DNA from: Cyanophora paradoxa CCMP329
Lineage: Eukaryota > Plantae > Glaucophyta
NCBI GenBank assembly: GCA_004431415.1
Contig: QPMI01000064.1
Location: forward strand, 186,001 to 250,000
Length of the DNA: 64,000 nucleotides
Reading direction: 5' to 3'
The translations under genes and the position numbers were made by a program. The notes under the pieces were generated by a model that did no database searches, was not told the origin of the DNA, and saw only the letters and a list, made by a program, of their open reading frames with translations. This document shows positions 25,591 to 56,043 of this stretch, piece by piece. The number at the start of each line of letters is the position of its first letter. Within the stretch, counting starts at the first letter, position 1.

Positions 25591-28500
25591 TCAGGGCGCG
25601 GTGGCCTCCCAGCCGAGGCCGCCGCGGTCCTGGAAGACATGCCTGGCCAGGGCGTCTGCCTCCGTTGTCCCGTCGGCCTGCTGCCGGTCAGGGGGCGGGG
25701 GTAGGGGCACGAGAGGCCCGGCCGCGCACCCTGGCCCCCGCGACGCTCAGCTGGAGCGCGCGGCCGACGCGGCGGACGCAGAGCGGGCGGGCGCGCCGCG
25801 GCTCGGCCTGCGGCTTGGCCTGCTCGAGGGCGCGGGCGGGGGGAGCCCCCGCGAAGCTCCAGACGCGGAGGCTCTTGTCCGCCCCCGCAGACACGACGGC
25901 TGCGTCGCCGAGGGCCAGGGCGCAGACCCACCCCGCGTGGCCCGCGAGCGCGCACAGGGGCGCCCCGTCCCGCGCGGACCACAGGCGGACGGTCCCGTCT
26001 TCGCCGCCCGTCGCCGCCGTCTCCCCGTCCTGCGCCCGGCTTAAGGCGGAGGAAGAGAAGAGAGCCGAAGGGGGCGCACGGGGGAGAGGGCGACGCTGAG
26101 GACCCAGCCGGCGTGGCCGGAGAGGACCCGGCACGAGTCGCCGCCGCCGCCCCAGAGTCGCAAGGCGCTGTCGCCGACGCTCCACAGCCGCCCCGTCCCG
26201 TCGCTCGACGCCGACGCGAGCGTGCGCCCGTCTTCGGAGAAGGCGAGCGCCCGCACCCAGTCCGAGTGTCCAGCCAAGGTCCGCACCGCCCGCCCCTCGC
26301 CCGCGGCCCAGAGTTGCACGGCCCCGTCCGTGTACCCCGCCGCCAGCAGCGTCCCATCCTGCGCGGCCCTCGGCTCCGGGGGTACGGCCGGCGGCGGCTG
26401 GGGAAGGGGGTACCCGCGTGAGGGCGAGGGAGAGGGCGGAGCGGGCGGGCCTCGCGCCCTCCTCCCCATCCGCCTCGTCGCTCGGCCTTGCGAATCGGAC
26501 GGCCTCAGGCCGATCAAAGGAAAGCAGAGCGCAGGGGCGCACCGCCGGAGGACGTGCCGCGCGGCGCCCGTCTCGGCGCTCCAGAGGCGCACCGTTCCAT
26601 CATCGCCGCCGGAGGCGACCGTCGAGCCGTCCTGACCGAGCCGGCCGATGAGGGCGCGCAGCGAGCGCGAGGCGGGGCCGCACCTGCGAGAGGGCGACGC
26701 ACTGGACCCAGCCGCGGTGCCCCCGGAGCTGCACGAGCCGCGCCTCGCCCGCCGCCCACAGCGGCGCCCGCGCGCCCGACGGGTCCGCCACTCGCCACAC
26801 CCCTACCGTCCCGTCCCCGCTGCCCGACGCCAGCGTCCGCCCGTCCTGCGGCGGTGTCGGGCGGCGCGCGGCCCGACGAAGGCGCCGCAGCGCACGCGGG
26901 AGAGGGCGACGTGCCGCGCGGCGCCCGTCTCGGCGCTCCAGAGGCGCGCCGTCCCGTCGTCTGCTCCCGAGGCGAGCGTCGCGCCGTCGCGGGAGATGGC
27001 GAGCGCGCAGACGGCGCCCGTGTGCCCCTCGATGCTCCGCACCGCCCGCCCCTCGGCCGCGTTGTACAGCGTGATGCGGCCGTCCTCGCCGCCCCAGCAG
27101 AGCGCCGCGCCGCTGGGCGAGAGGGCGAGGCAGGCGGCGGCGGGCGCCTCGACGGCGGAGCGGTGGCGGAGGGCGGCGGGGCTCGCGAGGGCCCAGAGAG
27201 CGACGCGGCCGTCGGCCCCGCACGAGGCGAGCGTGCGGGCGTCGTCGGAGAGGGCGACGCAGAGGACGGCCCCCGCGTGCCACTCGGCGCAGTCGAGCTG
27301 CCGCCGCTCCGGCGCGCCCCACAGACGCAGCGTCCGGTCCTCCCCGCCCGATACCAGCAGCCGCCCGTCCTGCGCTCCGTTCGGCCGGCGCCGGCCCTCG
27401 ATAGTCCGGCGGGGGTGGCGGCGCACGCGGGAGAAGGCGAGGGCGCGGACGGGGCCCGCGTGGCCCTCCAGCACCCCCTCCAGCGCCCCGCTCGCGGCGG
27501 CCCACAGCCGGAGGGCGCCGTCCGGCCCGCCCGTCGCCAGCATGCGCGCATCCGCCGAGAGGGCCAGCGCGAGGACTTCCCGGTCCGCCACGATCCGCCG
27601 GACCTGCGGTGCCCGTCAGTGGCCGCGCGAAACGCTTTCCCGCCGGCGCGCGCCTCGCGGCCGGTCTCCGCCTCCAGCACCGCCACGCGCCCGTCCGCGG
27701 AGCCCGAGACGACCCAGCGGCCCTCCGCCGCCTCCGAGAAGAGGACGGCCGTCACCTGCGCTCCGCTTCGTGAGCGGGGCGGGCGCCGGGCGGCGGGCGC
27801 GGCGCGCCCGGTCCGTGTGGCCCCGGTAGACGGGCTTGACGCCCAGCCGGCAGCCGGCGAGGCGGGCGCCCCGCAGGTCGGCCCCCTCCAAGTTCGCCTC
27901 CTCCAGCACCGCCTGAGAGAGGTCCGCCCCGCGAAGGTCCGCCCCCGCCGCCTCCATCGCGAAGAGGTTCGCCCCCGGCGCGCGCACGCCGCGCAGGTCC
28001 GCCCCGGCGAACGAGACGCCAGCTGCGCCGCGGTCGGACCCAGGGCGCGGTTCGCGGTTCGCGCGGGGGTGCGCGCCCATGTTCAGGATCGTGAGGGAGT
28101 TGGCCGCCGCGATCTGGGAGCCCCCGCGCGCCGACTCGCGCACGCAGCGCCAGAGCGCCTGCCGGCGGCCCGAATCAGCTCGCCCAAGCGCGGAGGCGAA
28201 GCGCGCCAAAAGGTCACACGCACCGAGGCGAAGTGCGGCTCCCGGCGCGCGTGGTCGGCGAGGAAGGGCAGCACTTTGGTGTCGTCCGTGAAGAGGCTGC
28301 GCGGCCCTTGGCTCAAAGATCGGACGGAGGCGAAGCCGACCGAAGACCGCACCGCTGGCTCAGCTCGCCCGCGATGACGGCCGTGTCGATGAGGGCGTCC
28401 AGGCGCCTGCCCGCGATGCCGTCCGCCAAAAAGTACTCCTGCGCCGCCCCGCTGAGCCTTGCCGTCCTCCCTCTGCTCGGCGGAGGGGCACCTTTAGGGA

Positions 28501-31500
28501 GGCATGCAGGAAGTAGTACGAGACGCGCAGGCCGCCCTCGGCCGCCGCCGTCAGCGGCGCGGCCCCGAGCACGTCCGCCTTCTCCTTGTCCCGGCCGCTG
28601 CGGAGCTTCAACACGACGCGCTTCATTGGGGAGGGCCAAGAATAGCGCACGCGAGGTAGGCGCGGAGCCCGGCCTCGACCTGCGCGTCGCCCCCCTCGCC
28701 GGCCTCGGCCAGCGCGGGGTCGCCCACGAAGAGCGAGAGGCCCGCCGTCCCGGCCTGCGGGGCGCGGGCGTGGGCGCCACGCCTTCAGGGGAGACAGAAG
28801 GGGAGGGCGAACCGTGTCCATGGCGCGGGCGAGGAGGCGGCAGACGATGCGGCACTCCTCGACGAGGGCGGCGGCGCCGCCCTGCCCGCGGCGCTTCTCG
28901 GCCTCGCGCGTGAACCACCCCTCCACAAAGGCGTCGTAGATGTCCTTCATGAGGAGGCGCGCGCCGCCGCCGGCCTCGCCCCCGCCCTCCTCCGCGCGCC
29001 GGGCGATCGCCGGCAGCTCCCGGCACGCGATCGAGAGCACGAAGGGCGTCCGGATGATGTCGAGCAGGCTCCCGATCTGCTTGACCTTGGCCACGTACCA
29101 CTCCACGTCGTGCAGCGGGTCCGGGCTCGCGGCCAGCAGCTGCTGCACGAAGGCCCGCGTCTGGCCCGCGTCGAAGGGGCACGTCCACGCCTCGCAGACG
29201 GAGGGGGACGGCCCGGGGTCCAGGGAGAACGAGTCGCGGTACGACTTGCCGAGGGCGGAGAGGTACTGAGCGCGGCAGGAGACAACCAGCCTCGCGGACC
29301 AGAGGGGCAGGTCCGGGTCCACCACGTGCGGGGCCTGCGACAACCTTGTCAAGGCCCGCTTTCCGAAGCGCGCGCGAAACACGAGTGACCTCCCGGAGGC
29401 GGCCTTCGTCGTAGGCGTCCAGTATGGGCAGGAGGCGGCACCTGCGCCGCGTGAGGAGGCGGGGAGAGCGGGGGCGGGAAATCGCGCACCCCGCGAGGAG
29501 GGCGTCCTCGAGCTCGCGGTCCCGCTCGCCGCGGCCGAGGCCGAGCTCGCGGAGGAGGAGGCGGGTGAGGGGCGAGCGGGCGGCGCCGCCGCGGAGGGAG
29601 GAGAGGGGAAGGAAGGCGGGGAAGGGGTCCCCCGAGGCGGGCGCCCAGGCGAGCAGGAGCCGGCGGTGGAGCCGCTTCAGGCTGGTCGTCTTCGAGCAGC
29701 CCGAGTCGCCGGTGAGGAGGAGGGAGCGGAAGGGGCCCGGGCCGGCCGACGCCGGGCCGGCCCCCGACGCGGCGAACGCGTCGAGGAACGAGTCGAGGTC
29801 GAAGCGGCGGCCCTCGCCGTCGGCGTAGCGGCCGTCGCTGTCCGGCGCCGCCCACGCCGGCACGTACACCTGCCGCGCCAGGCCCTCCCTCTCGTACGCC
29901 TCCAGCGCCCGCTCGCGCGCCTGCGCCGGAGCTCAGAGGCGCGTGGCGGGGCTGAGCGGGGGGGGGGCGCGCCGTGACGAGGCGGTCGCGCAGGCGCTGC
30001 TCGGGCGTGCGCGCGCCCTCGACCTCCAGCGCCTTGCGCAGCAGGGCGGACTGGCCCGCCGCCGCGCTCTGTGCCGCCCGGGGCGCACGCGGCCGGCTCG
30101 GCCGCACCTGCGCCGCCGCGGCCGCCTCCCGCGCGCGGGGGGCGCCCGAGTCGCGGAGCCGCTCGAGCGCTTCGAGGGCGGCGCGGGAGGCAAGGCCCCG
30201 CCCTCGAGCCCCGCCGCGTCCGCGAGGGCGCACGCGATCGCGCGGTGCACGCGCTCGCCGGCGCCCTGCGACGCCGCCGCCCCGGCGGCGGCCTCCAGCA
30301 GCCGCACCGCCTCCGCCGCTGCCTCCTCCGGGCCGCCCTCCACCACCTGGGCGCGGCTCAGTCTCTCAAACGGATCGAATCAAAGATTGAAGGGGGCGGG
30401 CCCGAAGGAGGGCGGCGCAGAGCGCGAGCGCCAGCTCGGGGCAGCGGACGACGTCGCGCAGGGCCCGGCCCTCCTCGCCCAGCAGCAGCGCGGAGAGCTG
30501 CGGCAGGCGCTCGGGCGTGGCGAGGGAGACCAGCAGCCGTGCCTCTGAGAACCTGCCGCGGGTGAGGCGGGGGCCCGCCTCGGTCCGCGACGCGCGCACC
30601 ATGGGCGGGCCTTCTTGACGCCGTCGGCACCCGCGACGGCCCGCAGGTCCGCCCACACGGACTGCAGCACCTCCCGCGCCTCCCCATGGTTCTCCTGAGC
30701 GGGCGTAAGGACACGCGGGATCAGGGCGGCGGCGCCCGGCGCGAACCTTGAGCCACATGACGGCGTCGATGACGGTCGTGGCGCCGAAGCTGCGGGCGAA
30801 GGTTAGGCGAGCGCGACGCGAAAGCTTTGAAGGTGCATGCGCCTGCCGAGGCCCTCCACGACGAACTTGGCCGCTTTGTACGCCATCTTCGCGAGGCGCA
30901 CTGCGGCGGCTCGGCGCGGGCGGTGGCGGATCGGGCGCGGCGGCGGCGGCGGCGCACGGGCGGCCTGGAAGCGGCGGACCATGTCGCCGAACTTGTCGAA
31001 GTCGCTGTTCGCGGAGACGAGCGCCTGCCGGCGGGTTCGGCTCGGCGGCCGCTGCGCGGGCGGCGCGGCCGACTCGCCTGCTGCGCGAGGACGGCGGCCG
31101 CCTCGGCGCGCCACCAGCCACCCGCGCCGCCCGCCTCCTTCGCCAGCGCCAGCAGCCGCTCGCTCAGCGGCTTGACCGTTTCCTCGTGGCTGACCGCCGC
31201 TCCATCGCCCGCCGCCTCGAGCGCGGCCAGCGTCGCGGCGACGAGCTCGAGGCGCGCGAGCGTGTCCGCCTCTCCGTACTTGATCCCGCGCACGCGCTCG
31301 AGCTGCGGGGGCGGCGCGTGAGAGGGCGGCGAGCTTCGCGCGGGCGGCGCGCGCCTGCTGCGTGCAGAACTGGACGACTTCGGCGCAGTCGGAGGCGGTG
31401 AACGTGTTCGGCGGCAGGCGGCCCAGCGCGTCGACCAGCGCGGCCAGCAGCGCGGGCTCCACGAGGGCCGCCCCGCGCGCCCGCTCCATGAGCTCTCCGA

Positions 31501-32094
31501 CGACCTGCCGCCGCGTCGTCGGGCGCGCACGGCGCGCGGCGGGCGGCGCGGCGGCACCTTTCTGCAGGAAGAGGCGTGGCGGGTAGAGACCAGGGCGCAG
31601 AGATCCGCGATGTGCACTCCGGAATCTGGAAGCGAGCGGAAAGCGAAGACCGCGGCCTCGCAGAGGACCCGCAGCTTCTCCTTTGCCGAGGCCGCGTCTC
31701 CGTCGAACTCGTGCTCAATGAATCGCTTCAAGGCTCGCGCGAGGCGCCCCACCTCGCCGAGCGCCGTGCCCTGGTTCATCAGGTCGCTGGATTGAAGCAG
31801 GACGAACAGGACGGCCATTTGCTCGCCATTCTGGATGCTGTGCAGCGAGAGGCTCGCGCTCTCGAGCGCCACAAGCTGCGCACGGGCCTTCTTGGCCGTG
31901 TCTGGGTCCAGCACAGTTTCCAGCGCGCCTTCTCCCACACCAACCGGCGCCGCGGCCGGCGCCTTCGCCTCCGCTCCGCCGGGAGAGGCAGGCTGAGGCG
32001 CGCCGCTCGCCACTTCTCCCGCCGTACGCGTGGCTGCATGCTCGGCGGCTGGCGGCGCGCCGCCCGCGGCCGCGGTGCTCGCTCCGCAGCCCAT
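25591..32094 (-). CDS. NLR-like STAND protein: acylation motif, ARM-like domain, NACHT, pentapeptide repeats, ~13 WD40 repeats
   Basis: MGCGAST start. NACHT: YVP, Walker A LLLTGDSGCSKTT (~29684-29720), Walker B LLPILDAYDE, sensor LVVSCRAQYL, TPFVL, winged-helix YYFLHASLK-EYFLA. AAANSLTILN then FAGADLRGVRAPGANL..ADLRGADLSQAVLEEANLEGADLRGA. Many GH..V..LA.S.DG..LASG..DG..RLW repeats. C-terminus LQLSVAGAR..ARHVFQDRGG, stop TGA at 25591-25593. Confidence 0.92.
30160..31870 (-). other. ARM-like helical N-terminal domain of the NLR (copy 1 of the shared domain)
   Basis: Aligns by eye along its length with 32690-34450 (+); see findings. Confidence 0.85.
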
Positions 32095-32210
32095 CAGAAG
32101 CTGCCGTGCTCACCGCAGCTTACTGCACGCTCCAGACCGGCGGAGAGGGCTCGCTGCTCGCTGCATCGTTGCGTTTGATCGCTTGACCCGTTTTGTTCGG
32201 AACCCGCCCC

Positions 32211-32241
<31 letters not shown>

Positions 32242-32353
32242 TATCCGAACTCTTGGAGCCTCGTCGGGGCGTCGGCTGTGGCGCCCAGGACGGGTGAAAG
32301 TTAGCTATGGACAACTAGCGACCTGTTGGTGCGCGAGGGACCGCTCCGTGCCC
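32095..32353. promoter_or_regulatory. Putative bidirectional promoter shared by the NLR and the chimeric dynein (259 bp, poly-C at 32212-32241)
   Basis: Divergent ATGs at 32094 (-) and 32354 (+), both encoding MGCGAS. Confidence 0.6.
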
Positions 32354-35300
32354 ATGGGTTGCGGCGCAAGCTCCGCGTCCGCTCCGCCGGCGAACGCAAG
32401 CGTGGCCGCGACGCCAGAGAGCCAGCGAAAGCATGCGGTAACATCCGCGAAGTATTCTGAGGTACGCAGAGCACTCCGCCCCCGCTCTCGAGCTGAATGT
32501 CCGTTCGCATGGTCCAGGCGGCGCCAGCCGAAGCCCCGCGTGCTGCTGAACCTGCGGCGAGCTCGGCCCCAGCTACAGCTCCAGCTCCGGTCGCAGCGCC
32601 AGTCCCAGCGTCTCCCCTGGAGCCCGATGCGCCGCCAGCGAAGGCCACGCGCGCCGCGCGCCGCGGCCGTCCGCGGCCTGCGCCCTTCGGCGCCGTCGAG
32701 GCAGCGGCACACATCGGATCGCTGGACGATATCCTCGGCCTAGAACACATCTCGCACCTGTACCGCATTGTTGCGGCCGCGGCCGCGAGCTCGAGCGCTA
32801 GCGACGAGGCGCCCGATGCGGACGCCGACAGCAAGGCGCTGCGTCGCGCCGCGCTCGCCCTGCGAGTCGTCCGGGACAGCTTCAACGGCGATCTGAACGC
32901 GGCGCTCTCCAAGCTTCACTCTCTTTGCATCGCAGGTCCGCGCGGCCTTAAAGCTTAGCGCGCAGGGCCGCGTTAGCTGACACTCTCCTCAGCGCTGTCC
33001 GCATTCGCCGAGGACGCGTCGCCATCGGACGACAGCATTTGCGACGTCTGCGCGATATCCGGCACGGGAGACAGCGAGCTGTGCCGCAGGGTCCGCGAGA
33101 CCGCGCCGCGGCCCCGGGCCCGCGCCCACCGCCCGCCGACGCCGCCCGGGCGCAGCTGCTGGCGGCCCTCGTGTCCAAGCTGGAGAGCCGGCCCCTCGTT
33201 CCAGGCGCGGCTCTGTACGAGGTGGTGGGCGCGCTTGGTCGCATCCCGCCGGACTCGCTCGGGCCTCGGGACTGGGCCGACCTCCTCGCCTTCTGCGGCC
33301 GCCTCGTGCGCGCCGCGGAAATCCGCATGCATATGCCCCTCTGGCGTGCTGATCTTCCTGCAGGTGGAAGGGGCGACGTCGACGGATGACGGCGCTGCGT
33401 GCCTCGCGCGGCTTGAGCTCGCCGCTGCCGTCCTCTCCGCCCTCGAAGCGACCGATCCCGAAGGTCCGATCCGCTCTCCATACCGCGGCCCTGCCTCGCC
33501 GACGCGCCCAACGTGCAGCGCTGGCGTGGCGGGCGCGGCACGCCGGCGTGGTCCGCCCGATGTGCGAATTTCTTCAAAACATCGCGGCGAGGGCGGCAGG
33601 CCCCGGCGGCTGGTGGCGCATCGAAGCGACCGCCCGCCTCTGCCTTCGTGCAATCGCCTCCACTCGCGGCGACTGCGACCGCTTCGGTACCGCTGTCTCC
33701 CGCTGCCGCGCCGCTGGTGCGTGTACTGCCTTGGAGTGCGTGTCGCAGTGCCGCATCCGGCCTCACGTTCCGCAGCCGAGGCGCTGGAGCAACTGCACAA
33801 GTCCGGGCGGCTCGCATCCCGTGCCGTCTCCTCTTACGGCGTCGGATCCGTTCTCGAGATCATTCTATGGCCCCAGGTGCGCTCGCGATCCCAGGCGGCC
33901 CTGCACCCACGCACGGCTGATGCGCAACGAGAGCACAGGATGGGCAAGAAGACGCGGCGCGGGCGCTGTGGGAAATGTGGGAGAACTCGCGAACCGTCAC
34001 CGGCGAGCCCGTGCCGCTCAGCGATTCGCCGTGGTTCGATAATCCGCGTTGATTTTCTTGCCGCCCTCCCCTGAAACACGCGTAGGTTCGTTCGGGCGCG
34101 CCTGGTGGCCGAACTGGGGGCCCGAGGCGCGATGGAGGAGCTGGAGACCCTTCTGGCTGCGGCGGGCGGGCGCCCCCTCGCAGACATCGCCTCTTGCAAG
34201 GAGCTCGCTCTCGCCTGCACCGCCACACTCGCCGCGGTGCGCGCCGCGCGGGGCATGCGTGGGCCCGCCTCACGTCGCCTCAGGTGGCGGAGGCCGAGTC
34301 GGGTGACACGGCCGTGGATGCAGTGCAGCTGCTGGAGCGGCTCGCAGCAAGGGGCGCGGCGGCGGCGGCGCCGGCCCTCGAGGACCTGGCCGCAAACGCT
34401 GCCTCCGACACGGCCAAGGCTGCTGCGCAAGCCCTCGAACGGCTCCGAGTGAAGCCCAGCGGGATGCAGCGACCGCCCGTCGCACGTGCTTCGCGCCGAA
34501 CCGCGCGGCATCCTGGCGAGCGAACGGCACTCGTCGCGGCAATTCTCGGAGCTGCGTCCAAAGAGAATGCAGCCGCTCCGAAATCGCACGGGCCGAGCGC
34601 GGCCTCGTCGGAGGAGGGGACGGAGGGCGAGCCGAGGGGCGCGATCAGCGTCGACCAAGAGTGCGTGGCGATGCAGGCGCTGTGGCTGGCGGCGAAGCTG
34701 CGGCCGTGGAAGCTCGAGTTCTACGCGCCAGAGGAGCTCCTGGATCTCTGCGACGAGCACGCCACACGCACGCACTCCCTCCTCTCAGCGCCCGTCGCGC
34801 GGGAGGCCGAGCCGCGCGCCCGGCTCCTCGAGTGGCAACGCCGTCTGGACGACCTTCGAGAGCTCCTGGAGACGCTGCAGCGATGTCACCGCGAGCTGCG
34901 GGATCTCGAGGTCAGGAAGAAGAATGTACTCGCGTGCACTGAGCCAATGCAGCTCTTGACCGATTTCCCCAGTTCACTTACACCGGCGGCGGGTCGGAAG
35001 TGGACGTGCCCGGGGCTCAGACGTTCGCTGCGGCGCAGGCTCTCTGGCGAAATGTGGCAGGCGCAGTTGCCGCTGCGGATTTCGCGATACTTCCGCTGGT
35101 CGGTGCCGCGGGCGTCTTGGCGGACGCGCAAGCTGCCCACCAGCGGCTTGAGGAGACAAGGAAGGCGCTGACGGAGCACCTCGACGTGCTGCAGGACGAC
35201 TTCCCCCGCTTTTTCTTCCTCTCGCACTGGGAGCTCGCGTCGGCCATCCCGCAGTTCAAGGGGTACGAGCAGGACCCGGGCCTTCTGGAAGGCACCGCGC

Positions 35301-38300
35301 GCCACCTGTTCCAGGGCGTCAAGGCGCTGGACGTCCGGGCTGGCGCCGTGGTTGCCGCCCGCTCTTTCGAGGGCGAAGTCCTGCCCTTCGAGGAGCCCAT
35401 CCCGCTCAAGCAAGCCGGCCTCGCACCGCTCTGGCGCGCCATCGAGGGGGCCCTGCGGGGCGCCGTGCGCGCCCAGTTGACTCGCGCCCTCCCCACCTAC
35501 AACCCGGTGCGGCTCGCACTCTTCCTGCCCCCGCCTTGGCTGAGCGCCCGCGCAGCACGCGAAGTGGGCGACGGAGTGGCCGGCGCAGGTGGCGCTTGTC
35601 TGCTCTCAGCTCGTGTGGACGCGGGAGGTGGAGGCGGCCATGGAAGCCGGCAGCGTGCGCCCGTACCTTGAGGCTTTTCGGGCTCACATGCTCGAGATCG
35701 TTCGCCTGCTACCCGAAGAGATGCCGAGGGCGAGACGCTCGGCGCTGCAGTCGCTGCTGACAATCAACGTGCATGCACGCGACGTCCTCGACTCGCTTGC
35801 CAACGCCGAAGTGTCCGACAAGCGCGACTATGCGTGGATCTCCCAGCTGCGATGTGCGTCCCTCGCTTTTCTCTAACGACGCCCATTCACGCGCCACAGA
35901 CTACTGGGAGGACGGAGTCGTGATCCGGATGGCGGACGCCTCGCGCGTGTACGGCTACGAGTACTACGGCTCCATCGAAGCGCTCGTCGTCACACCGCTC
36001 ACCGACCACTGCTACCGCATTCTTCTCGGAGCGATGCACAACTGCCTTGGCGCTGCGCTCGAGGGGCCCGCCGGCACTGGGAAGACCGAGACCGTCAAAG
36101 CGCTCGCTGTGGCCTGCGCGCAGCAGTGTGTAGGTGAGCCACCCCGCGCAAACGCCCCGCCCCCACCGCGCGCCCCTGCCGACGATCCTGCACAGTGCTC
36201 AACTGCTCGGACAGCCTCGACTACCTGATGCTGGCCAGGTTCTTCAGGGGCGCCGCGCAGTCGGCCGCGTGGGTCTGCTTCGACGAGTTCAACCGCATCG
36301 ACGTCGACGTCCTCTCCGTGGTGGCCCAGCAGATGCTCGCCGTCCAGCGAGCGCTGCAGGCCGGCGCCGCGACCTTCCTCCTGGAGGGCGCCGAGGTCCG
36401 CCTCGCGACCGGCCCGACCCTCGGCCTCTTCTTCACCATGAACCTCGGCTACCTGGGGCGCTCGAGCCTGCCGGACAGCCTCAAGCCCCTCATGCGGCCC
36501 GTCGCGGTGACCCTCCCCGACTTCAGCGCCGTGTACGAGGTCACGCTCTTCTTCTACGGCTTTGGCGAAGCCCGCCAGCTCGCCGCGAAGATCGCGGCCT
36601 TCTACCAGCTCGCCCGCAACCTCCTCTCGCAGCAGGATCAGTACGACTGGGGCATGCGCGCGGCCAAGCACGCCCTCTCCATGGTCCAGACCCTCAAGGG
36701 GCTCTACCCGGGGACTTCGGAGGAGAGCATCGTGCTGCAGGCGCTCATCACCGCCAACCGCGCGAAGCTCGTCAAGGCCGACGTGCCCCTCTTCGACGGC
36801 CTCTGCGCCGACCTCTTTCCCGGCGTCTCGGCCGCCAGCACGGACCACAGCGCCCTCCTCGGCGCCCTGCAGCGCGTGGCGGGGGAGATGCGCCTGCAGC
36901 TGACCGACTCCTTCCGCCTGTCGGCCCTGAAGCTCTACGAGGCGATCCTGCTGCGACACGGCGTCATGCTCGTCGGGCCTCCCATGGCAGGGAAGACGGC
37001 CCTGTACAGGCTGCTGGCGGCGGCGCTCGGCGAGCTCAACGCGCAGGGCCCGGCGGTTGAGCGGGCCGTCTCGGTGGCAGTGATCAACCCGAAGGCCGTC
37101 CCGCCCGGGCGGCTCCTCGGGTCCTTCACAGACTCCACGCAGGAGTGGCAGGACGGCGTGCTTGTGGGCCGCCTCCGCGACTTCTGCGGGTGGCGCAAGC
37201 AAGCGGGCGAGAGCGAGCCGCGCAAGTGGCTCGTGCTCGACGGGCCCGTCGACCCTGCCTGGGTCGAGGACCTGAACTCGCTGCTCGACGACAACCGCGT
37301 CCTGACCCTCATGACGGGCGAGCGGCTGCTCCTGCCGAAGAACGTGACCGTCCTCTTCGAGCTCCAGGACCTGGTCGTCGCGTCCCCCGCCACCATCTCC
37401 CGCGTCTGGATCGTCTTCATGGACGCAACGGACCTCGGCTGGCGGCCCCTGGTCGAGTCCTGGCTCGCGTCGCTGCCCGTGGCCATCGAAGCGGCTGGGA
37501 AGGAGGTGCGCCCGCCCGCCCGCCACGCGGCGCCGCGGCCTCGTAATCGTTGTGCGCAGGCGATCCGCGTGCTGGTCGACTGGCTGGTGGGGCCGAGTCT
37601 CGAGTTCGTCCGGGCCCGCGTGCGGGAGCCGTGGGGGACGCAGGACGCGCAGCTTGTGGCGGGCCTCCTCCGCCTCCTCGGGGCGCTGCTCGAGGACGCG
37701 GCGGACCCGAAGCAGCTCGCGGCCCTCTTCGTCTTCGCGCTCGTGTGGACGGTGGGCGCCTCGGGCGACGAGCCCGGGCGCGAGGCCTTCGACGGATTCC
37801 TGCGGCCGATCGTGGCGGGCGTCGACCCCGCGCGCCCGCCGCCGCCCCGCGCGGCGTTGGACCTCCCCGACGGCGCATCTCTCTACGACCTCCGCTTCGA
37901 CGGGGCGGCGGGCCGCTTCGGCCGCTGGGCCGACCGCATCGGGCCCGACTGGCGCCCGCCCCCCGGGGCCGTCCCGGGTGGCTTCCTCGTCCCGACGCCC
38001 GAGACGGAACGCGCGGCCTTCGTCCTCGCTAAGCTGGTCTCGCACGGCCACCCCGCGCTCCTCGTCGGGCCGCCCGCCGCCGGCAAGACGGCGATCGTGC
38101 GGGCCTGCCTGTCGCACCTCCCGCCCCGCTTCCGCCACGCCTCGCTGGCCCTCGCCACCCGCACCGAGGCCTCCGTGCTCCAGCAGCGGATGGAGGCCGA
38201 GCTCGTCAAGCGGGCCCGTGCGTCCTCCCCGGCCCCTCCCTCGGCCAATCTGACGGCCGGCAGGCGGCGTGCTGGCGCCGGATCCGGAGGGGGCCCGCCG

Positions 38301-41300
38301 GCTCGTGGTCTTCCTAGACGACCTGAACCTGCCGCAGCGGGAGAAGTACGGCTCGCAGCCGCCCCTCGAGCTCGTGCGCCAGTTCTGCGACCACGGCGGC
38401 TGGTACGCGGCTGCCGGGACCGACTTCCTCCGCGTGGAGGGCGTGCAACTCGTCGCCGCGATGGGCCCGCCGGGCGGCGGCCGGACAAGCATCAGCGCCC
38501 GCCTCAGCCGCCACTTCGGCCTGCTCTCCATCCCCGGGCCGAGCGGCGAAGCGCTCCGCAGCATCTACACGAGCGTGTGTTCGTGGTCGCTCGCCCAGCA
38601 CGGCTTCAGCGGGGACGTCGTGCGCCTGGCCCCCGCGCTCGCCGCCGCGACCGTGCAGCTGCACGAGAGGGCCGTGCAGGCGTTCCTCCCGACGGCCGCC
38701 AGGCCCCACTACGTCTTCACCGCCCGCAGGGTCGGCGAGCTCCTCCGCGGCGTCCTGCTCGCCTCGCCGCAGCGCGTCGCGACGGCCGAGGCGGCGGCGC
38801 GCCTCTGGGCCCACGAGGCGCTCCGCGTCTACGCCGACACGCTCGTGGACGACGCGGACCGCGCGGCGCTCGTGGCGGCGGTGCGGGAGGCGGCGGCGGG
38901 GCCGCTCGGCGTCCCCTCGAGCGTGCCTGCGCGCACCTCGCGGGCACCGACGCGGAGGGCTGCGGGAGCTGCACTGGGCGGGCGTGGCGGGCCGCTACGA
39001 GGAGCACGAGGCGGGCGAGCTGGCGCAGGCTCTGCAGGCGGCCGTGGAGGCGGACGGCGCCGGCGGCACGCTCCTCTTCCGCTCCGCCGTCGAGCACGCC
39101 GCGCGCGCCTCGCGCACCCTCACCGTCCCCGGCTGCCACGCCATCGTGCTCGGCGTGCCGGGCTCGGGCCGCGCCGAGCTCGTGCGGCTCGCCGCACGGC
39201 TGGCGGGGGCCGAGGTCGCCGAGCCCGCGCCCGAGTGGCGCAACGGCCTGCGGCGGCTGATGCGGCAGGCGGCGGCGCGGCGGACGGCACTCGTGCTGCA
39301 GGAGTCGCACCTCGAGGGCGGCTCCGTCCTGGATGACGTCTCGGCCCTCGTGAAGGGCGACGAGCTCCCGGGTCTCTTCTCCGCGGCCGAGCGCGCCGAG
39401 CTGGGCGAGCTCGTGCGGCATCTCGCCCCGGCCGGCGCCGCGCCGACGCCCGACGCCCTGCACGCCCTCTTCCTCGGCCAGTGCCGCCAGAACCTGCACC
39501 TCGTCCTCCTCCTCTCCCCCTCCGGCGACGACGCCCGCGCCCGCTTCCGCGACTTCCCCGCCCTCCTTGAGTCCTGCACCGTCGACTGGCGCGCCACGCC
39601 GCCGGTGCCGCGCCGCCGGCCCCGCGCCTGACGCGCTGCCGCAGGTTCGGCGAGCTCCCAGAGACGGTGCTGCACGCCGTGGCGGGCAAGGCGCTTGCCG
39701 GGGCGCAGCTGGAGGCGGCCGCGCGCGCCCCGCTGGTGCAGGCGTCCGTCGCCATCCACGCCTCCGTCGGCACCCTCCTCGTGCAGTTTGGGGCCGAGTT
39801 CAGGGGCCACCTGCCCGCCGCGCCGCCCTCCTTCGCGAGCTTCCTGGCTACCTTCAAGGCCCTGCTCGCCTCCAAGCGGCAGGAGCTTGCCGAGCAGCGG
39901 CAGCGCCTCGGGCTCGGCCTCGCGAAGCTGGCGGCGACGCGCCTGCGGCTCGAGTTCCTCCTCAAGGAGCAGGAGCAGATGGCGGCGGACATCGCGCGCG
40001 CGCAGACGGAGGCGGCCGCGACGGCCGCGTCGATCGCCGCGAAGAAGGTGGAGACGGCGCGCGCGCTGGAACGCGTCGCGGCGCAGCAGCAGTTCGCCGG
40101 GGAGCGCGCGGAGGAGGCGCGGGCGATCAAGGAGGCATGCGACGGCGAGCTCGCGCGGGCAGCGCCCGCCCTCGAGGCGGCGCTGGCGGCGCTGGACACG
40201 CTCAAGCCGGGCGACATCGCGCTGCTGCGGACGATGCAAAACCCGCCGGAGGGCGTGCGCCTCGTGATGGAGGCCGTCTGCGTCATGGCCGACGTGCGGC
40301 CCGTTGTGGCTGGCACCACCTCCGCGGGCGAACCGGTCCGGGACTACTGGGAGCCCGCCAAGAAGGCCCGTCTTCGCGCATCTGAATTCGAGACTCGCCC
40401 CTGACGCGCCGCCGCAGATGCTGTCGGACCCAGACTTCATCCGCAGCCTGAGGAGCTACGACAAGGAGCAGATCATGCCGAGCATCGCGAAGACCATCGA
40501 GGCCGTGTACCTCCCGGACGAGCGATTCCAGCCGGCCGCGGTGCGGCAGGACTCGCGCTCGGCGGCGGCCGTCGGCCTCTGCCTCTGGGTGCACGCCATC
40601 TTCGGGTACCGGCGCGTGCTGCGGGAGCTGCGGCCGAAGCGGGAGGCGGCGCGCGCGGCGGACGCCCTCTGCGAGAGGACGATGGCGGAGGTGGCCGAGC
40701 TCCGCGCGCAGCTGCAGCGGGCGGAGGGCGAGCTCGCGGCGCTCGACCGCCAGCTCGCCGCCACGCAGCGGCGCGCGGCCGAGGCGGAGGCGGCCCGGCG
40801 GCGCAGCGCGGCCAAGTCGGCCCGCGGCAGCCGCCTTTTGGAGGAGCTTGCAGACGAGCGCGAGCGGTGGGAGCGCGCGGCCGCCGAGCTCCGCGCCGGC
40901 GAGCCGCGCCTTGTCGGCGACGTCCTCCTCGCGGCCGCCTGCGTCTCGTACGCGGGGCCCTTCCCCCCCGCCTACCGCGAGCGCGCACTGCCGGCCTGGC
41001 TGGAGGCCTGCCGCGCCTCCGCCCTGGCGCACACGAGCCCCTTCGCGCTCCAGGCGGTGCTCGGGGACCCCCTCGCGGTCGGCGAGTGGCACGCGCTCGG
41101 GCTCCCGGCCGACGGCTTCTCGACCGACAACGGCGTCATCGCCCTCGCCTCCCGCAGGCGCGCCGCCCCACGAGACGGCCGCCTGCAGCTAATTGCATCG
41201 CAGGTGGCCCCTCATGATCGACCCGCAAGACCGGGCGAACCGGTGGGTCAAGAACATGGAGAAGGCGAATGGCCTCGTGGTGCGCGCCGTCCCTCCGATG

Positions 41301-44300
41301 ATTCCGCCGCTCCGCCCGATCGATTCCCCAGGTCCTCCGGTCGCTGCAAGGGGAGGGCCTCCGGCAGTTCGAGGCGGCGGTGCGGGCGGGGAGCCCCGCG
41401 CTGGTCGAGAACGTGGGCGAGGAGCTCGAGCCGGCCCTGCTGCCGCTGCTGAGGAAGGAGGTCGTCGAGAGCGGCGGCGCGCGCTTCGTCTTCCTCGGCG
41501 GCGCCGCCGTCGAGTATGGGGACGGCTTCCGCCTCTACCTCACCTCCCGCCTGCCCGCCGGCCGCCTGCGCGCCGAGCTCGTCGCCCGCGCGTGCGTCGT
41601 CAGCTTCGTGGAGACGCCCGAGGGCCTCGAGGAGCAGCTGCTCGGGGCCGCGCTGGCCATCGAGCACCCGGAGACGGTCGAGTGGAACCAGCGGCTCGTG
41701 CAGGCGCGGCTCGGCCGCGACCTTCGGCGGGCGCAGGAGGCCGTCCTTGAGCAGCTCTCCAAGTCCGACGGGGATCTGCTGGAGGAGGAGGGCGAGGCGG
41801 CCGTCGAGCGCATGCGCGCCTCGCACGCCCTCGCGCGCCAGATCGCCGAGAAGCGCCGCGCCGCCGAGGCCGAGCTGGCGGCCGAGCGGCGGCTGCGGGC
41901 GGGCCTGGAGCCCGTCGCCCGCGCCGGCGCGACCTCTTCTTCGCCGCTTCGGAGCTCCTCCACGTGAACCCGATGTACCAGTACAGGTGCGAGCTTCTGC
42001 ATCCTCGCCGCGAGGTCATAACTGAACTCCTTCGCCTACAGCCTGGCGTGGTTCACGGGCCTCTTCGGTGCCCTCGTGCGGCAGACGCCGCGGCGGGCCC
42101 CCGACCGCGCGGCCGAGCTCGTTGCGGCCGTGCGCTTCGGCGCCTTCTCCGCCGTCTGCCGCTCCCTCTTCGATCGCGACCGCCTCCTCTTCGCCCTGCT
42201 CCTCGCCGCGCTCACCCTGCGGAGGGAGGGCGCGCTGGAGCCCGCCGAGTGGGCCTTCTTCGCCACCGGCGGCCTCTTCGGCGGCGAGGGCGCCGCCGCC
42301 GCCAACCCGGCCCCCGCCTGGCTGCCCGCCCCCGCCTGGTCCGCCCTTGCCCGCCTCGCCCGCCTCCCTGGCCTCGCCGCCTTCCCCGCCCGCTTCGCCA
42401 AGGAGACGGCCGGCTGGCGCACGGTCTTCGAGGGCGCCGAGCCGCACGCGGCGGCCTTCCCCGGCGCGCCGCTTCCCCCCTTCCACCGCCTCCTCGTCCT
42501 CCGCTGCCTGCGCCCCGACTCAGTCGTCCCCGCCGCCCGCGCCTTCGTCGCCGAGACGCTCGGCGAGCGCTTCGCGCGGCCGCCGCCCGCGACGCTCCAG
42601 GAGGCCCTGGACCTCTCGACGCCCGCCAGCCCCCTCCTCTTCGTGCTGAGCTCCGGGGTGGATTTCACGGGCGAGCTGCTGGCCCTCGCGGAGCGCGCGG
42701 GCCGGCGGGACGACCTCTCCATCGTCTCCCTGGGGCAGGGGCAGGGGCCCGCCGCCGCCCGCCTCCTCCTCGAGGCCTCCCGCACGGGCAAGTGGCTCCT
42801 GCTCGCGAACTGCCACCTAGCCGGCTCCTGGCTCCATCAGCTCGAGCGGGCGCGCCCCTCTCTGTACTCTGTTCGGCCCGCGCGCCGCTGACGCCACTGA
42901 TAAATTAGATGTGCGAGAACTTCGTGCCGGAGGCCCTGCATCCGAACTTCCGCCTCTGGCTCACGTCGCAGCCCAAGGAGGACTTCCCGCTGCTCCTCCT
43001 CCGCAGCTCCCTGAAGATCACGAGCGAGGCGCCCCGGGGCCTCCGCGCCGCCCTCGCGCGGTCCCTGGCGGCCAGCGGCGGCGAGCCCGAGCTGCCCGAG
43101 GCGAGCGCGCGCGAGTGGCGCCGCCTCCGCTTCGCCCTCTGCCTCGCGCACGCCGTCGTCCTCGAGCGGCGCGAGTTCGGCCCGCTCGGCTGGTCCGCCC
43201 CGTACGAGTTCCACGACGCGGACCGCGCCGCGGCGCTCGCCGCCCTGCGGGAGGCCCTCCGGCGCGCCGGGGACGGGCCGCCGCCCTGGCGGACCTGGCG
43301 CGGGCGGCCGCCGAGCAGCACTACGGCGGGCGCGCCGACGGCGACCACGACCGTGCCCTCCTCCGGTCCCTCTTCTCCCAGGCGTACGGCGGCGTTGGGA
43401 TCGGCGGCATTCCACTGCCGCCCGACGGGACCCTCGAGGATCACGTCTCCTTCGCCGCCGCGCTGCCCGACGATGGCGACGCCGCCGCCGCCGCGGTCGG
43501 CCTCCACGTGAACGCGAGGCACGCGGTCGCGCCCCGGATTCCTCGCGCCTGACGCGGGCGGCAGCCTCGCGCGGCGGCGGGCGGAGGCGGCGAGCCTGCT
43601 CGAGGCGGTCCTGGCGACCCAGTTCACGGTGCCTCGGCGCGTTTCGCGCGCCGGGGCGCCTGCTGACGCGGCCACAGTCGTCGGCGGCGGCGGCGGCGGC
43701 GCGGGCGCGGGCGGGGCCAGCTCGAACCCCGACGCTCACGCGGTCGCGGGCAGTGCGCGGCCACAAACCGACCGCTCGCGCCCGCGGCTGATCCCTCCAC
43801 AGGCGTGCTGGAGGCCCTGGCGGGCCTCTCGGTCGGCCCCGCCAGCCCCTCGCTGGGGGACGGCCCCCTGCAGTCGGTGCTGGCGGCCGAGTCGGCGCGC
43901 TTCGAGCGGCTGCTGCGCGAGGTCGCCAACGCGCTGCGGACCCTCCGCCTCGCCCTCGAGGGCCGCGTCCCCATGAGCCCCGAGCGGGAGGACACGGCGG
44001 CCGCCCTGGCCGCGGGGCGCGTGCCGGAGAGCTGGTTCCGCTTCTCCTACCGATCCCTGCGGCCCCTCGGCGGGCGCGCCTCCCGCCCTTTGTCCCCTTT
44101 CTCCCTTCCCTCTGACCGCCCGCAGGTACGTGGCGGACTTGGCCGCGCGCGTCGCGTTCTTCGCGGCGTGGGCGGCGGGCCCCGCCCCGCCCGCCGCCTT
44201 CTGGCTCCCGGCCTTTTTCTCCCCGCACGCCTTCCTGGCCGCCGCGCGGCAGGCGCACGCGCGGGCCGCCGGCGCCTCCCTCGTCAGCGTCCGCCTCGCC

Positions 44301-44710
44301 TTCGACGTGCCCGTGCGTGCCCTGGCGATGCAATCCATACCGGCGCGCCGCTGACGCTCCGCAGGCGGCCGGGGCGCCGCCCCCGAGCGTGGCGTGCTCG
44401 TGCGCGGCCTCTTCCTCGACGGGGCGCGCTGGGACGAGGCCCGCGGCGCCCTCGGCGAGCAGAGGCCCGGCGAGCTGTACCCCCCGCTGCCCCCGCTTTG
44501 GGTCCGGCCCTGCGCCCCGGACGACCCCCGGCCGCCTCGAGCTCCGGCCCGCGGCACGCGTGCCCCCTGTACCAGCTGCCCACGCGCCGCGCGCCGCACC
44601 CGCTCCCCCCCTCCCTCAACCACGTCGTCGACGTGGCGCTCCCCTCCGACGCGCCGGCGGGGCACTGGCTCCAGCGCGGCGTCGCCCTCCTCTGCCACCC
44701 CCCCGACTAG
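32354..44710 (+). CDS. Divergent axonemal (inner-arm-like) dynein heavy chain whose tail is replaced by an acylated ARM-like domain; three 1-bp frameshifts as assembled
   Basis: Linker FPRFFFLS; VHARDV..WISQLR; YGYEY..LVVTPLTD. AAA1 GPAGTGKTET (36064), CFDEFNRIDVDVLSVVAQQ, TMN.GY.GR..LP..LK, YDWGMRA. AAA2 GVMLVGPPMAGKT, LDGPVDPAWVEDLNSLLDDN, SPATISR. AAA3 GPPAAGKT, FLDDLNLPQREKYGSQPPLELVRQ. AAA4 GVPGSGR. Stalk/MTBD PALEAALAALDTLKPGDI..NPPEGVRLVMEAVC. AAA5 RWPLMIDPQ. AAA6 SLGQGQG, NCHL, HPNFRLWLTS. C-terminus GLFLDGARWD, CPLY, HWLQRGVALLC, stop at 44710. Confidence 0.93.
32690..34450 (+). other. ARM-like helical domain at the dynein N-terminus (copy 2 of the shared domain)
   Basis: FNGDLNAALSKLHSLC, LGRIPPDSLGPRDWADLLAFC, LARLELAAAVLSALEA, GGWWRIEA, ELALACTATL and ALERLR each match the NLR domain. 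Confidence 0.85.
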
Positions 44711-45499: not shown

Positions 45500-47060
45500 T
45501 TTCCCCCGTCCTGAAGCTCCGAGGCTCGATGGCAATCATTGAATGGCCGAGGCTTCCGCTGCGCCGAGCCCCGCTGAAAAAGCTTCAAGGCTTACTCACC
45601 ATCCAGCCTCACTGAGTCAGCGCCGCCGGCGCCGCCGACCGTCGGACTCGGCGAGATCGAGCTAGGCCGGGCGCGGAAACGAGCTCCAAATTCGAAATGA
45701 TCATTTGCCGACTCCATGCGCGCATGCGCGTGCATCGCAGCATGTATGCGCGCATGCTAGCTCTAGAATAGCATATATATTTAATATTCCAATTCTGTGC
45801 GGGGAGCTCCAACATAGATCTCGACGTCGAGCAGCGCAGCTTGGAGCACCTCGCGGAACTCGGGATGCTGAAGGATGTCATCGGCGGCTGCGAGCCAGAG
45901 ATCCAGATGGCGGAGGTGCCGGAGGGTGGCGACGGCGGCGACGCCGCTCGGGGACCTTAGCGGCAGCTTCGAGCGCACAGACAGCCTCTCGAGAGAAGGG
46001 ACGTCGGTGCCAAGTCTCTGCACACAATTACAAGATTAAATGACACCACGTGCACATTTGAAAGCAGCTAAGTTATGGCGAAGTTAAGCACTACAAGCGC
46101 CAGCTCCGAATTCACCTGCAGAAATGCACTCGGTATCTCCTCGCGAATTGGCTCTCTTCTGAGCAAAGCGCTGAGCGTGGGCGCCGGGCAGGAAACAGAA
46201 AGAGACTTGAGCTTCGACCACTGGGTCATGGGATGTTGAGCACAGGCTGAATAAGTCAAGAGACAAGGCCTGCGCATGCACATGATGCATGCGAAATTAT
46301 AGGTTTATATCGATCGATGAGTGGCATGTTGAGAGGTCACGCATGCGCATCTCTAGCTCAGAAAATCTCGTAACTGTCCGAGCAAACATTGTGCGGCTGG
46401 CTTCACTAAATGCAAGGTCGACGTCCTCGAAGCACCCGAACGCGGCATTTCGCAGCCGCTCGGCGCTGTTCAGAAGCGGCCATATGTCCAAGGTACGAAG
46501 GTTGAACAAGGCAACGTATTCGAGCTCCGACATGCCTTGCAAGAAGCCGAGGTGCTCTTGATGCGCTCTCATTTGGAACGCTGCACGATCAAGGTCAGTT
46601 AAAAGGGCGAGACTAGCTATACTTCTTGCATACACTGACTGATTATTATATATACGTGCATGCGCATGCACCACGCAGAGACGTCATGCCAGAGAGCGGT
46701 TGAAGTTCCATCGCGGAGAGAGATGGCTGGATTTCTGATCCGCGGCCTCTGTCTTCAAAATAAGTATAAAACTCTGGAAAAAGCAGATCGATATCGATGT
46801 CAGTATATATGCAAACCGGAAAGAAATATCAATCAAACCAATCAGTCGCAATTACCCATTTTCAGCTGCTCCAACTGTTGGAAGGCTGCAACTGACGAGA
46901 ACACGCGACGCATATGCCCACTGCAGCTGCAGGGCCCGACCTTCCGCCTCGGCCTCCGCCCGACCCTGCGGTTCCGACCCCGCGTGCACTCTCCAGATTT
47001 AGACCTGCCCTGTAGCTACCCTTCCTCCTGGATGCTCTGCCGCGAGCCCGAACCCCATAG
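45500..47060 (-). pseudogene. Degraded LRR-like (F-box/LRR-type) gene fragments
   Basis: Exon fragments with LxxLxL periodicity: PSLERLSVRS, LRHLRHLDLW, WSKLKSLSVSC, MSELEYVALFNL. I could not build a complete frame. Confidence 0.35.
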
Positions 47061-47429
47061 ATCACCCGCTTCGGATACCGAATAACGCTAAGCCTCGGAT
47101 ACCCGTAGCACTGTTTAACTTCTATGCCTACGTACAGATACAAAAACTAAAAAGGGGGACATGTATAATTAAAAGTCAGTCGCAGTACTCAGTAATGACC
47201 ATCGACTTCGATAGTTTCGAGTGATACATCCAGCAGCAGCAGCTTCCGAAAGCCAAGGCGAAGAGAGAGACAGCCCAGACAGCTGCTTGGTAGCCGGCTC
47301 CCACATATCCATAAAGCGCGGATCCTGCGCTTGGCCCCACCTACGAAGCGGTCCGTCTTCATAATCAGACATGCGAGCTTCAAAGATGCTGAAACAAAAA
47401 CAGAGAGGACGCGCCAGATATGCAATCGC

Positions 47430-50160: not shown

Positions 50161-50508
50161 TCTGGCTCCGCCAGATGGGCATCTATAGCGCTAGCTAGGT
50201 CTGTCTGGGTGCGCGCGCCACCATCATGCACCTGCACAACAGTCATAGCTGCATATGATATACGCGCGGGCGTATGCTGAACAAGTTTGTCAGAGCTCGA
50301 GTTGCGCCGCGTATCTTTCAGGACCACCACGAGCTCCGAATCCACGGACTGTACATATGCCGCCTTGCAGTTGGCTATGGGGGCCATATGGATGCGATCG
50401 TGGTCTTCGTTTCGCTGAGCTTCACACTCAGAAATCCGCCGGGCCGCGGCTAACTTGAACGCTGCGCATGCAGCTGCAGCTGTGCACGTGACATTAGAAG
50501 CTAGCATC

Positions 50509-50566
50509 CCTATAGCTATAGCTAGCTTTCTGTAGCAGCAAACAGAAAGCTAGCTATAGCTATAGG
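50509..50566. repeat. Perfect 25-bp inverted repeat with an 8-nt loop
   Basis: CCTATAGCTATAGCTAGCTTTCTGT (50509-50533) / ACAGAAAGCTAGCTATAGCTATAGG (50542-50566). Confidence 0.9.
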
Positions 50567-52076: not shown

Positions 52077-52589
52077 TAGCTCTCCAGTATTAGTGCGCAC
52101 GATATTAATATTAGAACTCCGATCGAACTCTGATCAATTGGACAATTGCAAACGCTGATCGAATTCGCCGCCGAACGGCCTCGACGTACTCTGAATCGTC
52201 TCTGATGAGTCTGATCATGATTCATGAGTAGCCTACTGTAGTCTGCAGCTGTAGCTCTTTCCCCCGACCAATCTTCCCCGAATGCTCTGAGCCCGGCGGC
52301 TCCACCAGGCTTGCTCTCGGACGAGCGAGCCCCCGACCCGACCCGCCGTGCCGACGACACGGCGGGCCGTACTCTAGCGTGTACAGAGTGGTTTAGATTA
52401 TAGTGCGCCTTCTCGGAGGCCCTAGCTTACTAGGCATAGCGCTAGCTACAGCTGCAGCTCACTTCGCTGCCCACCTCTGATTGCTATTCTCGTCCCTGGG
52501 TAGTCACTCCCTTTCCCGCGTAGGATCTTTCCTGTGCTGCAGCTCTAGACTTAGTCCCCGGGGTAGCGTCTCCAGTTATTTCCATATCC

Positions 52590-55988: not shown

Positions 55989-56043
55989 CTAGTGCCAGAT
56001 TAACGGAAATATTTAACATATGCCATACAGATCCTAGAGAATA

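Follow-up and report, generated by a model that had tools for sequence, protein, structure and literature searches.

A stretch of 64,000 nucleotides from the glaucophyte Cyanophora paradoxa CCMP329 (assembly GCA_004431415.1, contig QPMI01000064.1, positions 186,001 to 250,000 of the forward strand), called the window here and numbered from its first letter, raises the question of how a dynein heavy chain motor came to stand behind a foreign N-terminal domain that opens with a putative acylation motif, and whether such a protein could work directly at a membrane. Dynein heavy chains are thought to be targeted through their tails. The gene in question, which begins at 32354 on the forward strand, proved to be a real, transcribed chimeric gene, with one open reading frame from the N-terminal domain to the dynein motor and not an artefact of gene merging. 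Its domain architecture is real and unusual, and a function can be inferred for it. The explanation preferred here, with a probability of roughly 0.55, is that a predicted lipid anchor and a helical domain of the NACHT-WD40 family were placed on a complete but tail-less motor, the breaks seen near the 3' end of the frame being deletions in the assembly.

The AAA1-AAA3 exon, compared with 1.8 billion representative proteins, returned one public gene model of 2,837 aa (P0001; EP00741_Cyanophora_paradoxa_P022582, tig00000248_g21807.t1) that is 100% identical to the window. The exon chain derived here is the chain of that model, which came from an independent gene predictor, and P0001 served as the query protein for the first 2,837 codons. 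From four public runs (X1, X2, X3 and X8), contigs were placed on positions 31900-37800 (5,901 letters); the GC content over the gene is 0.69-0.79. Ten GT..AG joints, each skipping 46-65 bases, were found in the contigs of X1-X3 and none in the X8 contig, so that X1-X3 contain spliced RNA. The X8 contig is colinear with the window over 33173-37800 (4.6 kb) with zero differences, and for that reason it was taken as DNA that gives no sign of misassembly there, the junction included.

The two parts of the protein meet within the exon at 34284-34910 (forward strand), which encodes residues 474-682 of P0001, is 627 nt or 209 codons long, has phase 0 at both ends and contains no stop. It reads, in order, VAEAESGDTAVDAVQLLERL...ALERLRV, a low-complexity spacer of about 64 residues, and ISVDQECVAMQALW...RELRDLE. 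Homology to the N-terminal domain extends to 34304 and is followed by an Ala-rich part (34305-34451), by the spacer (residues 530-593, about 34452-34643) and by the dynein linker from residue 594 (34644); this 3' part of the exon matches solved dynein heavy chains where their linker begins (chain 9e5c_6a, residues 1134-1220). Of the bordering introns, 34237-34283 is spliced out in X1 and X3 and 34911-34972 in X3. The preceding exon (34086-34236) reads in the frame that matches the paralogues described below (WFVRARLV...) and closes on a codon boundary, and therefore 34284 opens a codon in the linker frame; the match to the paralogue P0155 crosses the splice at 34237-34283 (AALFAV|AEADGG versus ATLAAV|AEAESG). 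RNA contigs lie inside the junction exon in three runs, 34107-34439, 34455-34660 and 34724-34910. An upstream gene could not terminate before the linker, since its frame has no stop there. The first-pass annotation, a reading of the sequence alone, had held that this exon passes without intron or stop into the linker and that the fusion is no artefact of its splice model, and had named reads showing a misassembly as grounds for giving up the idea; both statements are borne out by the spliced borders, by the paralogues and RNA joints that set the frame and by the identical public model, and the colinear DNA contig shows no difference across the junction.

The ten introns confirmed by RNA, all GT..AG and on the forward strand, are 32462-32517, 32936-32992, 33091-33155, 33877-33938, 34034-34085, 34237-34283, 34911-34972, 35507-35555, 35854-35899 and 36134-36195, the last four of which sit within the dynein linker and AAA1. 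Three more (33306-33363, 33464-33518 and 33717-33775) were placed by frame, GT..AG ends and paralogue alignment and are the same in P0001; one RNA contig has its first aligned letter at 33517, after 18 letters that do not match, which is what intron 33464-33518 would lead one to expect. The nine N-terminal exons, a region with six RNA-confirmed and three inferred introns, are 32354-32461, 32518-32935, 32993-33090, 33156-33305 and 33364-33463 (exons 1-5) and 33519-33716, 33776-33876, 33939-34033 and 34086-34236 (exons 6-9), and together encode residues 1-473. From the ATG at 32354, which is itself covered by RNA, a stop-free frame runs across these 13 introns and through the junction exon into the motor. 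Far more abundant transcripts of other origin contain the same short GC-rich words as 34350-34378 and 36270-36307. These shared words produce depth spikes of 20-60 in each of the three RNA runs, together with chimeric-looking joints (33435>34350, 37450>34360), which are repeats, not splicing of the dynein gene.

What the foreign N-terminus is can be answered from its relatives. Residues 1-593 comprise the MGCGAS start, a Pro/Ala-rich stretch, a helical domain of about 390 aa and the spacer, and Pfam has no family in them. The all-helical domain (residues ~90-480; 32677-34304, forward strand) is homologous only to the N-termini of Cyanophora NACHT-pentapeptide-WD40 proteins. A search with this domain in which long proteins were admitted returned only two others, both from Cyanophora: P0154 (E 3.4e-48), which begins MGCGCSKPK, and P0155 (E 7.7e-33), which begins MGCGASSPT. 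In both, WD40 propellers follow; a NACHT domain (PF05729) is on record in the database for P0154 but not for P0155. The neighbouring gene on the opposite strand carries the domain as well, so that it is common to the dynein gene and three proteins of this kind. The dynein chain thus has the homology across the helical domain and the MGCG start of the family, and a dynein motor follows where NACHT and WD40 parts would stand; this origin had been overlooked earlier. No stand-alone homologue of the domain was found among proteins of 264-840 aa, and no relative of the junction region among metagenome contigs.

The first-pass annotation had called the domain ARM-like. An AF2 model built on a small alignment of paralogues consists entirely of helices, with a mean pLDDT of 61.5 and good confidence only over about the first 170 residues. 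Foldseek found nothing in the PDB at E <= 0.001, VIA-align gave Z about 9 to HEAT/ARM solenoids where about 13 is needed for helical repeats, and Atlas searches by shape and by features gave TM-scores of 0.35-0.54 with only a generic HEAT/ARM/TPR-like resemblance. Because all structural matches are generic, the domain is better described as alpha-solenoid-like without a specific family: the earlier term amounts to a generic alpha-solenoid prediction, no Pfam repeat family matches and the structural matches fall below meaningful levels. An MLKL- or HeLo-like identity was also considered, and nothing was found in its support.

The start codon and MGCGASS motif (32354-32374, forward strand) suggest how this N-terminus may be used. 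Gly2 is predicted to be N-myristoylated and Cys3 palmitoylated, and Ser6 fits the preference of N-myristoyltransferase (NMT); the motif has the Met-Gly start, the Cys at position 3 and the permissive position 6 of SH4-like sequences. Such a prediction draws on what is known of NMT substrates and of SH4 motifs, with Lck (MGCGCS) and G-alpha-i (MGCTLS) as examples of dual-acylated SH4-type N-termini. Like these, the Cyanophora motif has Met-Gly-Cys and a small residue at position 6, and P0154 has exactly the first six residues of Lck; unlike them, it stands in front of a helical domain that is followed by a motor of about 3,000 aa, and its acylation is predicted. All four family members (the dynein gene, the neighbour, P0154 and P0155) start with MGCG(A/C)S, and because the motif is kept in all four it is probably used. 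The proposal of N-acylation made in the earlier reading therefore fits both the myristoylation/palmitoylation consensus and the conservation within the family.

Upstream of the linker no trace of an ordinary dynein tail was detected. Pfam finds no DHC_N1 in residues 1-593 and no solved dynein chain aligns to them; when residues 1-1040 are used as query, the matches to solved dyneins all set in at residue 594-625. Residues 1062-1510 of Chlamydomonas DHC2 align to 595-1040 of the query, and about 1,060 tail residues in an ordinary inner-arm dynein stand against 593 unrelated residues here; a tail homologous to inner-arm tails is missing from the Cyanophora protein. The absence of the canonical tail, claimed in the first reading, accordingly holds, and no part of the N-terminus aligned with the tails of solved dyneins. 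For motor constructs of human dynein-1 in the PDB, the first residue lies no more than about 40 residues from the point equivalent to residue 594 (residues 38-469 of PDB 8fd6 align to 625-1033 of the query), so that the structural linker seems complete. Among the short-tailed dyneins in the top matches (AAA1 at residue 650-1040), none begins Met-Gly-Cys.

The linker (DHC_N2) through to the AAA1 Walker A motif GPAGTGKT (residue 1015) occupies 34644-36133 on the forward strand, as defined by RNA-confirmed introns, Pfam DHC_N2 and AAA_6 and PDB alignments, and after the junction exon is encoded in the exons 34973-35506, 35556-35853 and 35900-36133. The remainder of AAA1, then AAA2, AAA3, AAA4, the stalk with the microtubule-binding domain (MTBD) and AAA5 follow at 36196-41986 and were placed by Pfam, motifs and intron ends; the public model predicts introns here near 37506-37559, 38218-38263, 38923-38968, 39571-39644, 40366/40370-40417, 41159-41198 and 41280-41331. 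On P0001, Pfam reports DHC_N2, AAA_6, AAA_5, Dynein_AAA_lid, AAA_7, AAA_lid_1, AAA_8, MT and AAA_9. The MT match spans residues 2241-2545 (E 5e-32) and places the stalk and MTBD between AAA4 and AAA5. On stop-free pieces further downstream, Pfam finds Dynein_heavy (AAA6), AAA_lid_11 and all parts of Dynein_C. The chain thus has the linker and six AAA+ modules of a dynein heavy chain and not the N-terminal tail. The AAA1 motifs are intact (GPAGTGKT, CFDEFNR, the sensor-I Asn in FFTMNLGY, and YDWGMR), and SPATISR is present too; every motif quoted in the earlier reading for an active AAA1 was found, along with the stalk and MTBD. Its impression that AAA4 and the C-terminal domain look shortened and divergent finds no support. 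The AAA4 P-loop, GVPGSGR, has the GSGR also found in ordinary inner-arm dyneins, and since this is the normal inner-arm form AAA4 is not degenerate; AAA_8 is matched nearly end to end, and every Dynein_C segment was recovered. The public-model intron at 37506-37559 is 54 bases long, in frame and stop-free, and is covered by no listed RNA contig; its retention would lengthen the AAA2 lid region by 18 residues (..VRPPARHAAPRPRNRCAQ..).

To which dynein class the motor belongs was addressed by phylogeny. The best solved matches are DNAH3, DNAH7, DNAH12 and single-headed inner-arm chains of Chlamydomonas. In an IQ-TREE analysis (LG+G4) of 2,200 motor columns and 43 rows aligned with MAFFT, with reference clades labelled from database names and PDB look-ups, the motor falls in a clade of 13 rows with the DNAH7-type reference P0002 (SH-aLRT 99), separate from the clades of DNAH1-type, DNAH6, DNAH2 and DNAH11; a FastTree analysis of AAA1-3 agrees. 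By its sequence the motor belongs to the DNAH3/7/12-type single-headed inner-arm dyneins (IAD-3), on a long branch, and the axonemal class proposed for it earlier is thereby made more precise. Its composition is biased, with 40% Ala+Gly+Arg+Pro, and it scores 490 bits against about 830 for a fungal orthologue compared with human DNAH7. From the long branch, low identity and low bit score it is seen as a fast-evolving orphan.

The 3' end is the part of the gene that the assembly presents least cleanly, and its three frame breaks had escaped the earlier reading. The first, at 41920-41933 (forward strand), leaves 14 nt between the conserved PVA and LFF where homologues require 15, so that the frame slips, and P0001 ends just beyond it at the stop 41965-41967. 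In a tentative model, the AAA5 extension, AAA6, lid and C-terminal domain nevertheless follow downstream, at 41987-44710, ending ...HWLQRGVALLCHPPD with a stop at 44708-44710, as located by Pfam and by tblastn against four full-length dyneins; the 3' exons were searched as stop-free pieces, and the frame-corrected full protein is predicted at about 3,650 aa. The second break (43269-43289, forward strand) passes from ...RRAGDG to AAALADLARAAAEQHYGG within a G/C run, where the codons overlap and no intron could fit, and the third (44511-44554, forward strand) lies between ...LWVRP and HACPLYQ, where 44 nt with C-runs, not a multiple of 3, are present. For none of the three could a GT/GC..AG candidate intron be found that retains the conserved residues. 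The other frame changes in this part are accounted for by predicted introns on the forward strand, at 41987-42041 (GT-AG), 42850-42908 and 44074-44125 (both GC-AG), and 44317-44364 or 44313-44364. The GC-AG donors (GCGCGCC..) resemble the usual GTGCGCGCC donor of the gene with T changed to C, and these introns restore a near-perfect dynein alignment (LER|MCENF.. and ..RPLGG|YVADL..).

Each break is consistent with one missing base in a G/C-rich run, in the stretch of highest GC, and one-base losses in G/C runs are the usual error of long-read assemblies. The three are therefore probably homopolymer assembly errors, but they could also reflect decay of the 3' part. Similarity to dyneins is no lower in the downstream exons (35-44% identity) than in the upstream ones, and the downstream exons retain usable splice sites and the final stop. 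Stops number 0 in 2,268 codons of the coding frame against 9 and 22 in the other two sense frames, which is in favour of constraint on the sequence. No transcript-derived protein across the first break was found, in a search whose length filter would hide an open reading frame of 195 aa. A Pfam-recognisable gene that might serve as a control for assembly indels was sought at 1-25 kb and 46-64 kb of the window, and none was present.

If the gene is intact as proposed, a mechanism can be sketched for it. With Gly2 myristoylated and Cys3 palmitoylated, the N-terminus would be tethered to a membrane, and the spacer would join this anchor to the linker. When a dynein motor is fixed through the N-terminal end of its linker, it moves the stalk-bound microtubule. 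The ATP-driven linker swing could then shift a microtubule with respect to the membrane, or carry the membrane in the direction of microtubule minus ends, and an array of such lipid-anchored motors would slide microtubules against the membrane. Being single-headed and probably non-processive, the motor would be expected to act together with others of its kind, much like the surface-anchored motor domains of gliding assays. It might do so where the flagellar membrane faces the axoneme, or at the glaucophyte cortical vesicles that overlie microtubules. The mechanism takes the three 3' frame breaks as one-base assembly deletions. As a proposal from sequence, a membrane-bound motor function is reasonable.

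Several observations weigh against this explanation, and most of them would suit a chimera that arose as an evolutionary accident and is now decaying: transcribed and spliced, but yielding either a truncated protein of about 2,837 aa that lacks AAA6 and the C-terminal domain or no stable protein at all, and having no motor function. No orthologue and no relative of the N-terminal domain was found outside Cyanophora among representative proteins and metagenome contigs. The best match other than itself among the 1.8 billion proteins is only 41-43% identical (37-43% across the nearest dyneins), and the branch measures 1.16 where the median is 0.45, a factor of about 2.5, in keeping with the low bit score. 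Expression is low, with contig depths of about 2-8, and no single RNA contig among those listed bridges the whole junction exon. The frame, moreover, is broken three times in the last 2.8 kb and never in the first 9.5 kb, the public model stopping at the first break, a pattern that would fit decay after a real truncation. Against decay speak a frame of 2,820 codons that is stop-free despite large divergence, the retention of all AAA1 catalytic motifs and of the MTBD, downstream exons that still resemble dyneins and have usable splice sites as well as the terminal stop, and three breaks that all look like one-base losses in G/C runs; it is a possible but somewhat unlikely explanation. The gaps in RNA coverage bear also on the possibility that separate genes for a small acylated helical protein and for a tail-less dynein were wrongly merged, since no listed RNA contig bridges 34440-34454 and 34661-34723, and long stop-free frames are common at 70-77% GC. 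Against a merger, the linker is reached from upstream without any stop, the junction exon is connected by RNA to exon 9 on one side and to exon 11 on the other and has its interior covered in two further runs, and an independent predictor gave the same chain. A merger is thus very improbable, and split or not, the dynein would still be tail-less.

A different view of the N-terminus grants that the motor is functional and makes the domain mainly a homotypic adaptor, which would bind the N-terminal domain of the neighbour's product so that an activated, oligomerised receptor recruits or clusters the motor. The domain does occur only at the N-termini of STAND (NACHT-WD40) proteins and of this dynein, and the two genes stand head to head, 259 bp apart, in an arrangement that resembles NLR and effector gene pairs sharing an N-terminal module. 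NLRs typically carry an effector or adaptor module as their N-terminal domain, and the adjacent fungal genes NWD2 and HET-S share an N-terminal motif. The two Cyanophora domains are just ~30-40% identical, however, and their binding is conjectural. Membrane location is probably common to the whole family, because all members keep the acylation motif, and so does not separate an adaptor from an anchor; the adaptor role, which is compatible with membrane anchoring, is considered unlikely as the main one. An extension of the same idea, slightly more doubtful again, would make the two genes a receptor-plus-effector pair, in which a membrane-bound NACHT-WD40 sensor and the dynein share the homotypic domain and a STAND/NLR-type signal is turned into force on microtubules. 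Activation of the sensor might then cluster motors on the membrane, for example to move or rupture a compartment during infection.

The preferred explanation, a lipid-anchored and tail-less inner-arm motor, can be set beside several known systems. The IAD-3 dyneins (DNAH3, DNAH7 and DNAH12, the monomeric chains of Chlamydomonas; the DHC7 class, PMC5100056) share with it the linker, six AAA+ modules, the stalk and MTBD, the C-sequence and GSGR in AAA4, but they are far less divergent and have a tail that docks on the doublet and binds actin with p28 or centrin, where the Cyanophora chain has unrelated sequence. The main precedent for non-dynein domains replacing the assembly region on a paralogous motor is the third outer-arm chain (Chlamydomonas alpha, Tetrahymena gamma; DHC4-alpha), whose N-terminal assembly domain is replaced by kelch and Ig repeats (PMC5100056; PMC12338079, King). 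That swap is ancient, is conserved across Diaphoretickes and docks in the outer arm via the beta chain, whereas the Cyanophora swap is known from one species and an inner-arm-type motor, with a STAND-family module bearing a lipid-anchor motif as donor. In the chimeric dyneins of green plants and stramenopiles that combine a DHC7 head with a DHC9-beta tail (PMC5100056), the motor is of the same class as the Cyanophora one, but both halves are dynein. Kollmar (PMC5100056) could align the tails of all new classes and orphans to a known class, with a single diplomonad dynein as the exception; the Cyanophora N-terminus is not alignable. DNAHX and DNHD1 (PMC11785096) are likewise lineage-restricted heavy chains with unusual properties, but DNAHX keeps its tail, forms a heterodimer and has a degenerate AAA1, unlike the tail-less chain with intact AAA1 described here. 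Engineered tail-truncated motors (human dynein-1, PDB 8fd6; the Dictyostelium 380-kDa motor, 3vkg) come close to it in their similar linker start and foreign N-terminal anchor; the Cyanophora chain is natural, and its anchor would be a predicted lipid and a helical domain.

Full-text searches of the literature on myristoylated or unusual dynein heavy chains and on Cyanophora dyneins or NACHT-WD40 proteins brought up no account of this gene or of its architecture, and the first-pass remark that no myristoylated dynein heavy chain is known agrees with the searchable literature, where none was found. If the explanation is right, the gene would represent a second independent replacement of a dynein tail, after the kelch/Ig outer-arm chain, and the first dynein in the searchable literature that points to direct membrane attachment. 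The chain would be a natural, testable counterpart of the motor domains anchored to surfaces in vitro. The gene connects STAND receptors and dyneins, two families that are not known to exchange modules. The case is limited to one species, with low expression and a 3' end that is not cleanly readable in the assembly.

Around the gene the window changes in character. Right after the dynein stop codon GC falls from about 0.69-0.77 to 0.52-0.58, and the region from about 45500 to 64000 has few long open reading frames, ten of which lack a convincing Pfam family. On the other side lies the neighbouring gene (25600-32094, reverse strand, about 6.5 kb), which encodes MGCGAST, the paralogous helical domain, a NACHT-type P-loop, pentapeptide repeats and many WD40 repeats; its P-loop, GDSGCSKTT, aligns to that of P0154. 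At least two further members of this NACHT-WD40 family (P0154 and P0155) are on other contigs. A phase-0 intron falls at the same place in the alignment of neighbour and dynein gene (CRK|VV versus CRR|LL), which argues for duplication at the DNA level. Between the divergent start codons, the 259 bp at 32095-32353 include a C-tract, the 5' untranslated region of the dynein gene and a short upstream open reading frame. The C-tract, about 30 bases at about 32212-32242, was treated as a repeat in read placement. RNA contigs of the forward-strand gene start at 32262 and 32273, and the contig over the 5' end of the neighbour extends to 32197. The upstream open reading frame, of 3 codons, begins with an ATG at 32307 within the 5' untranslated region of the dynein gene.

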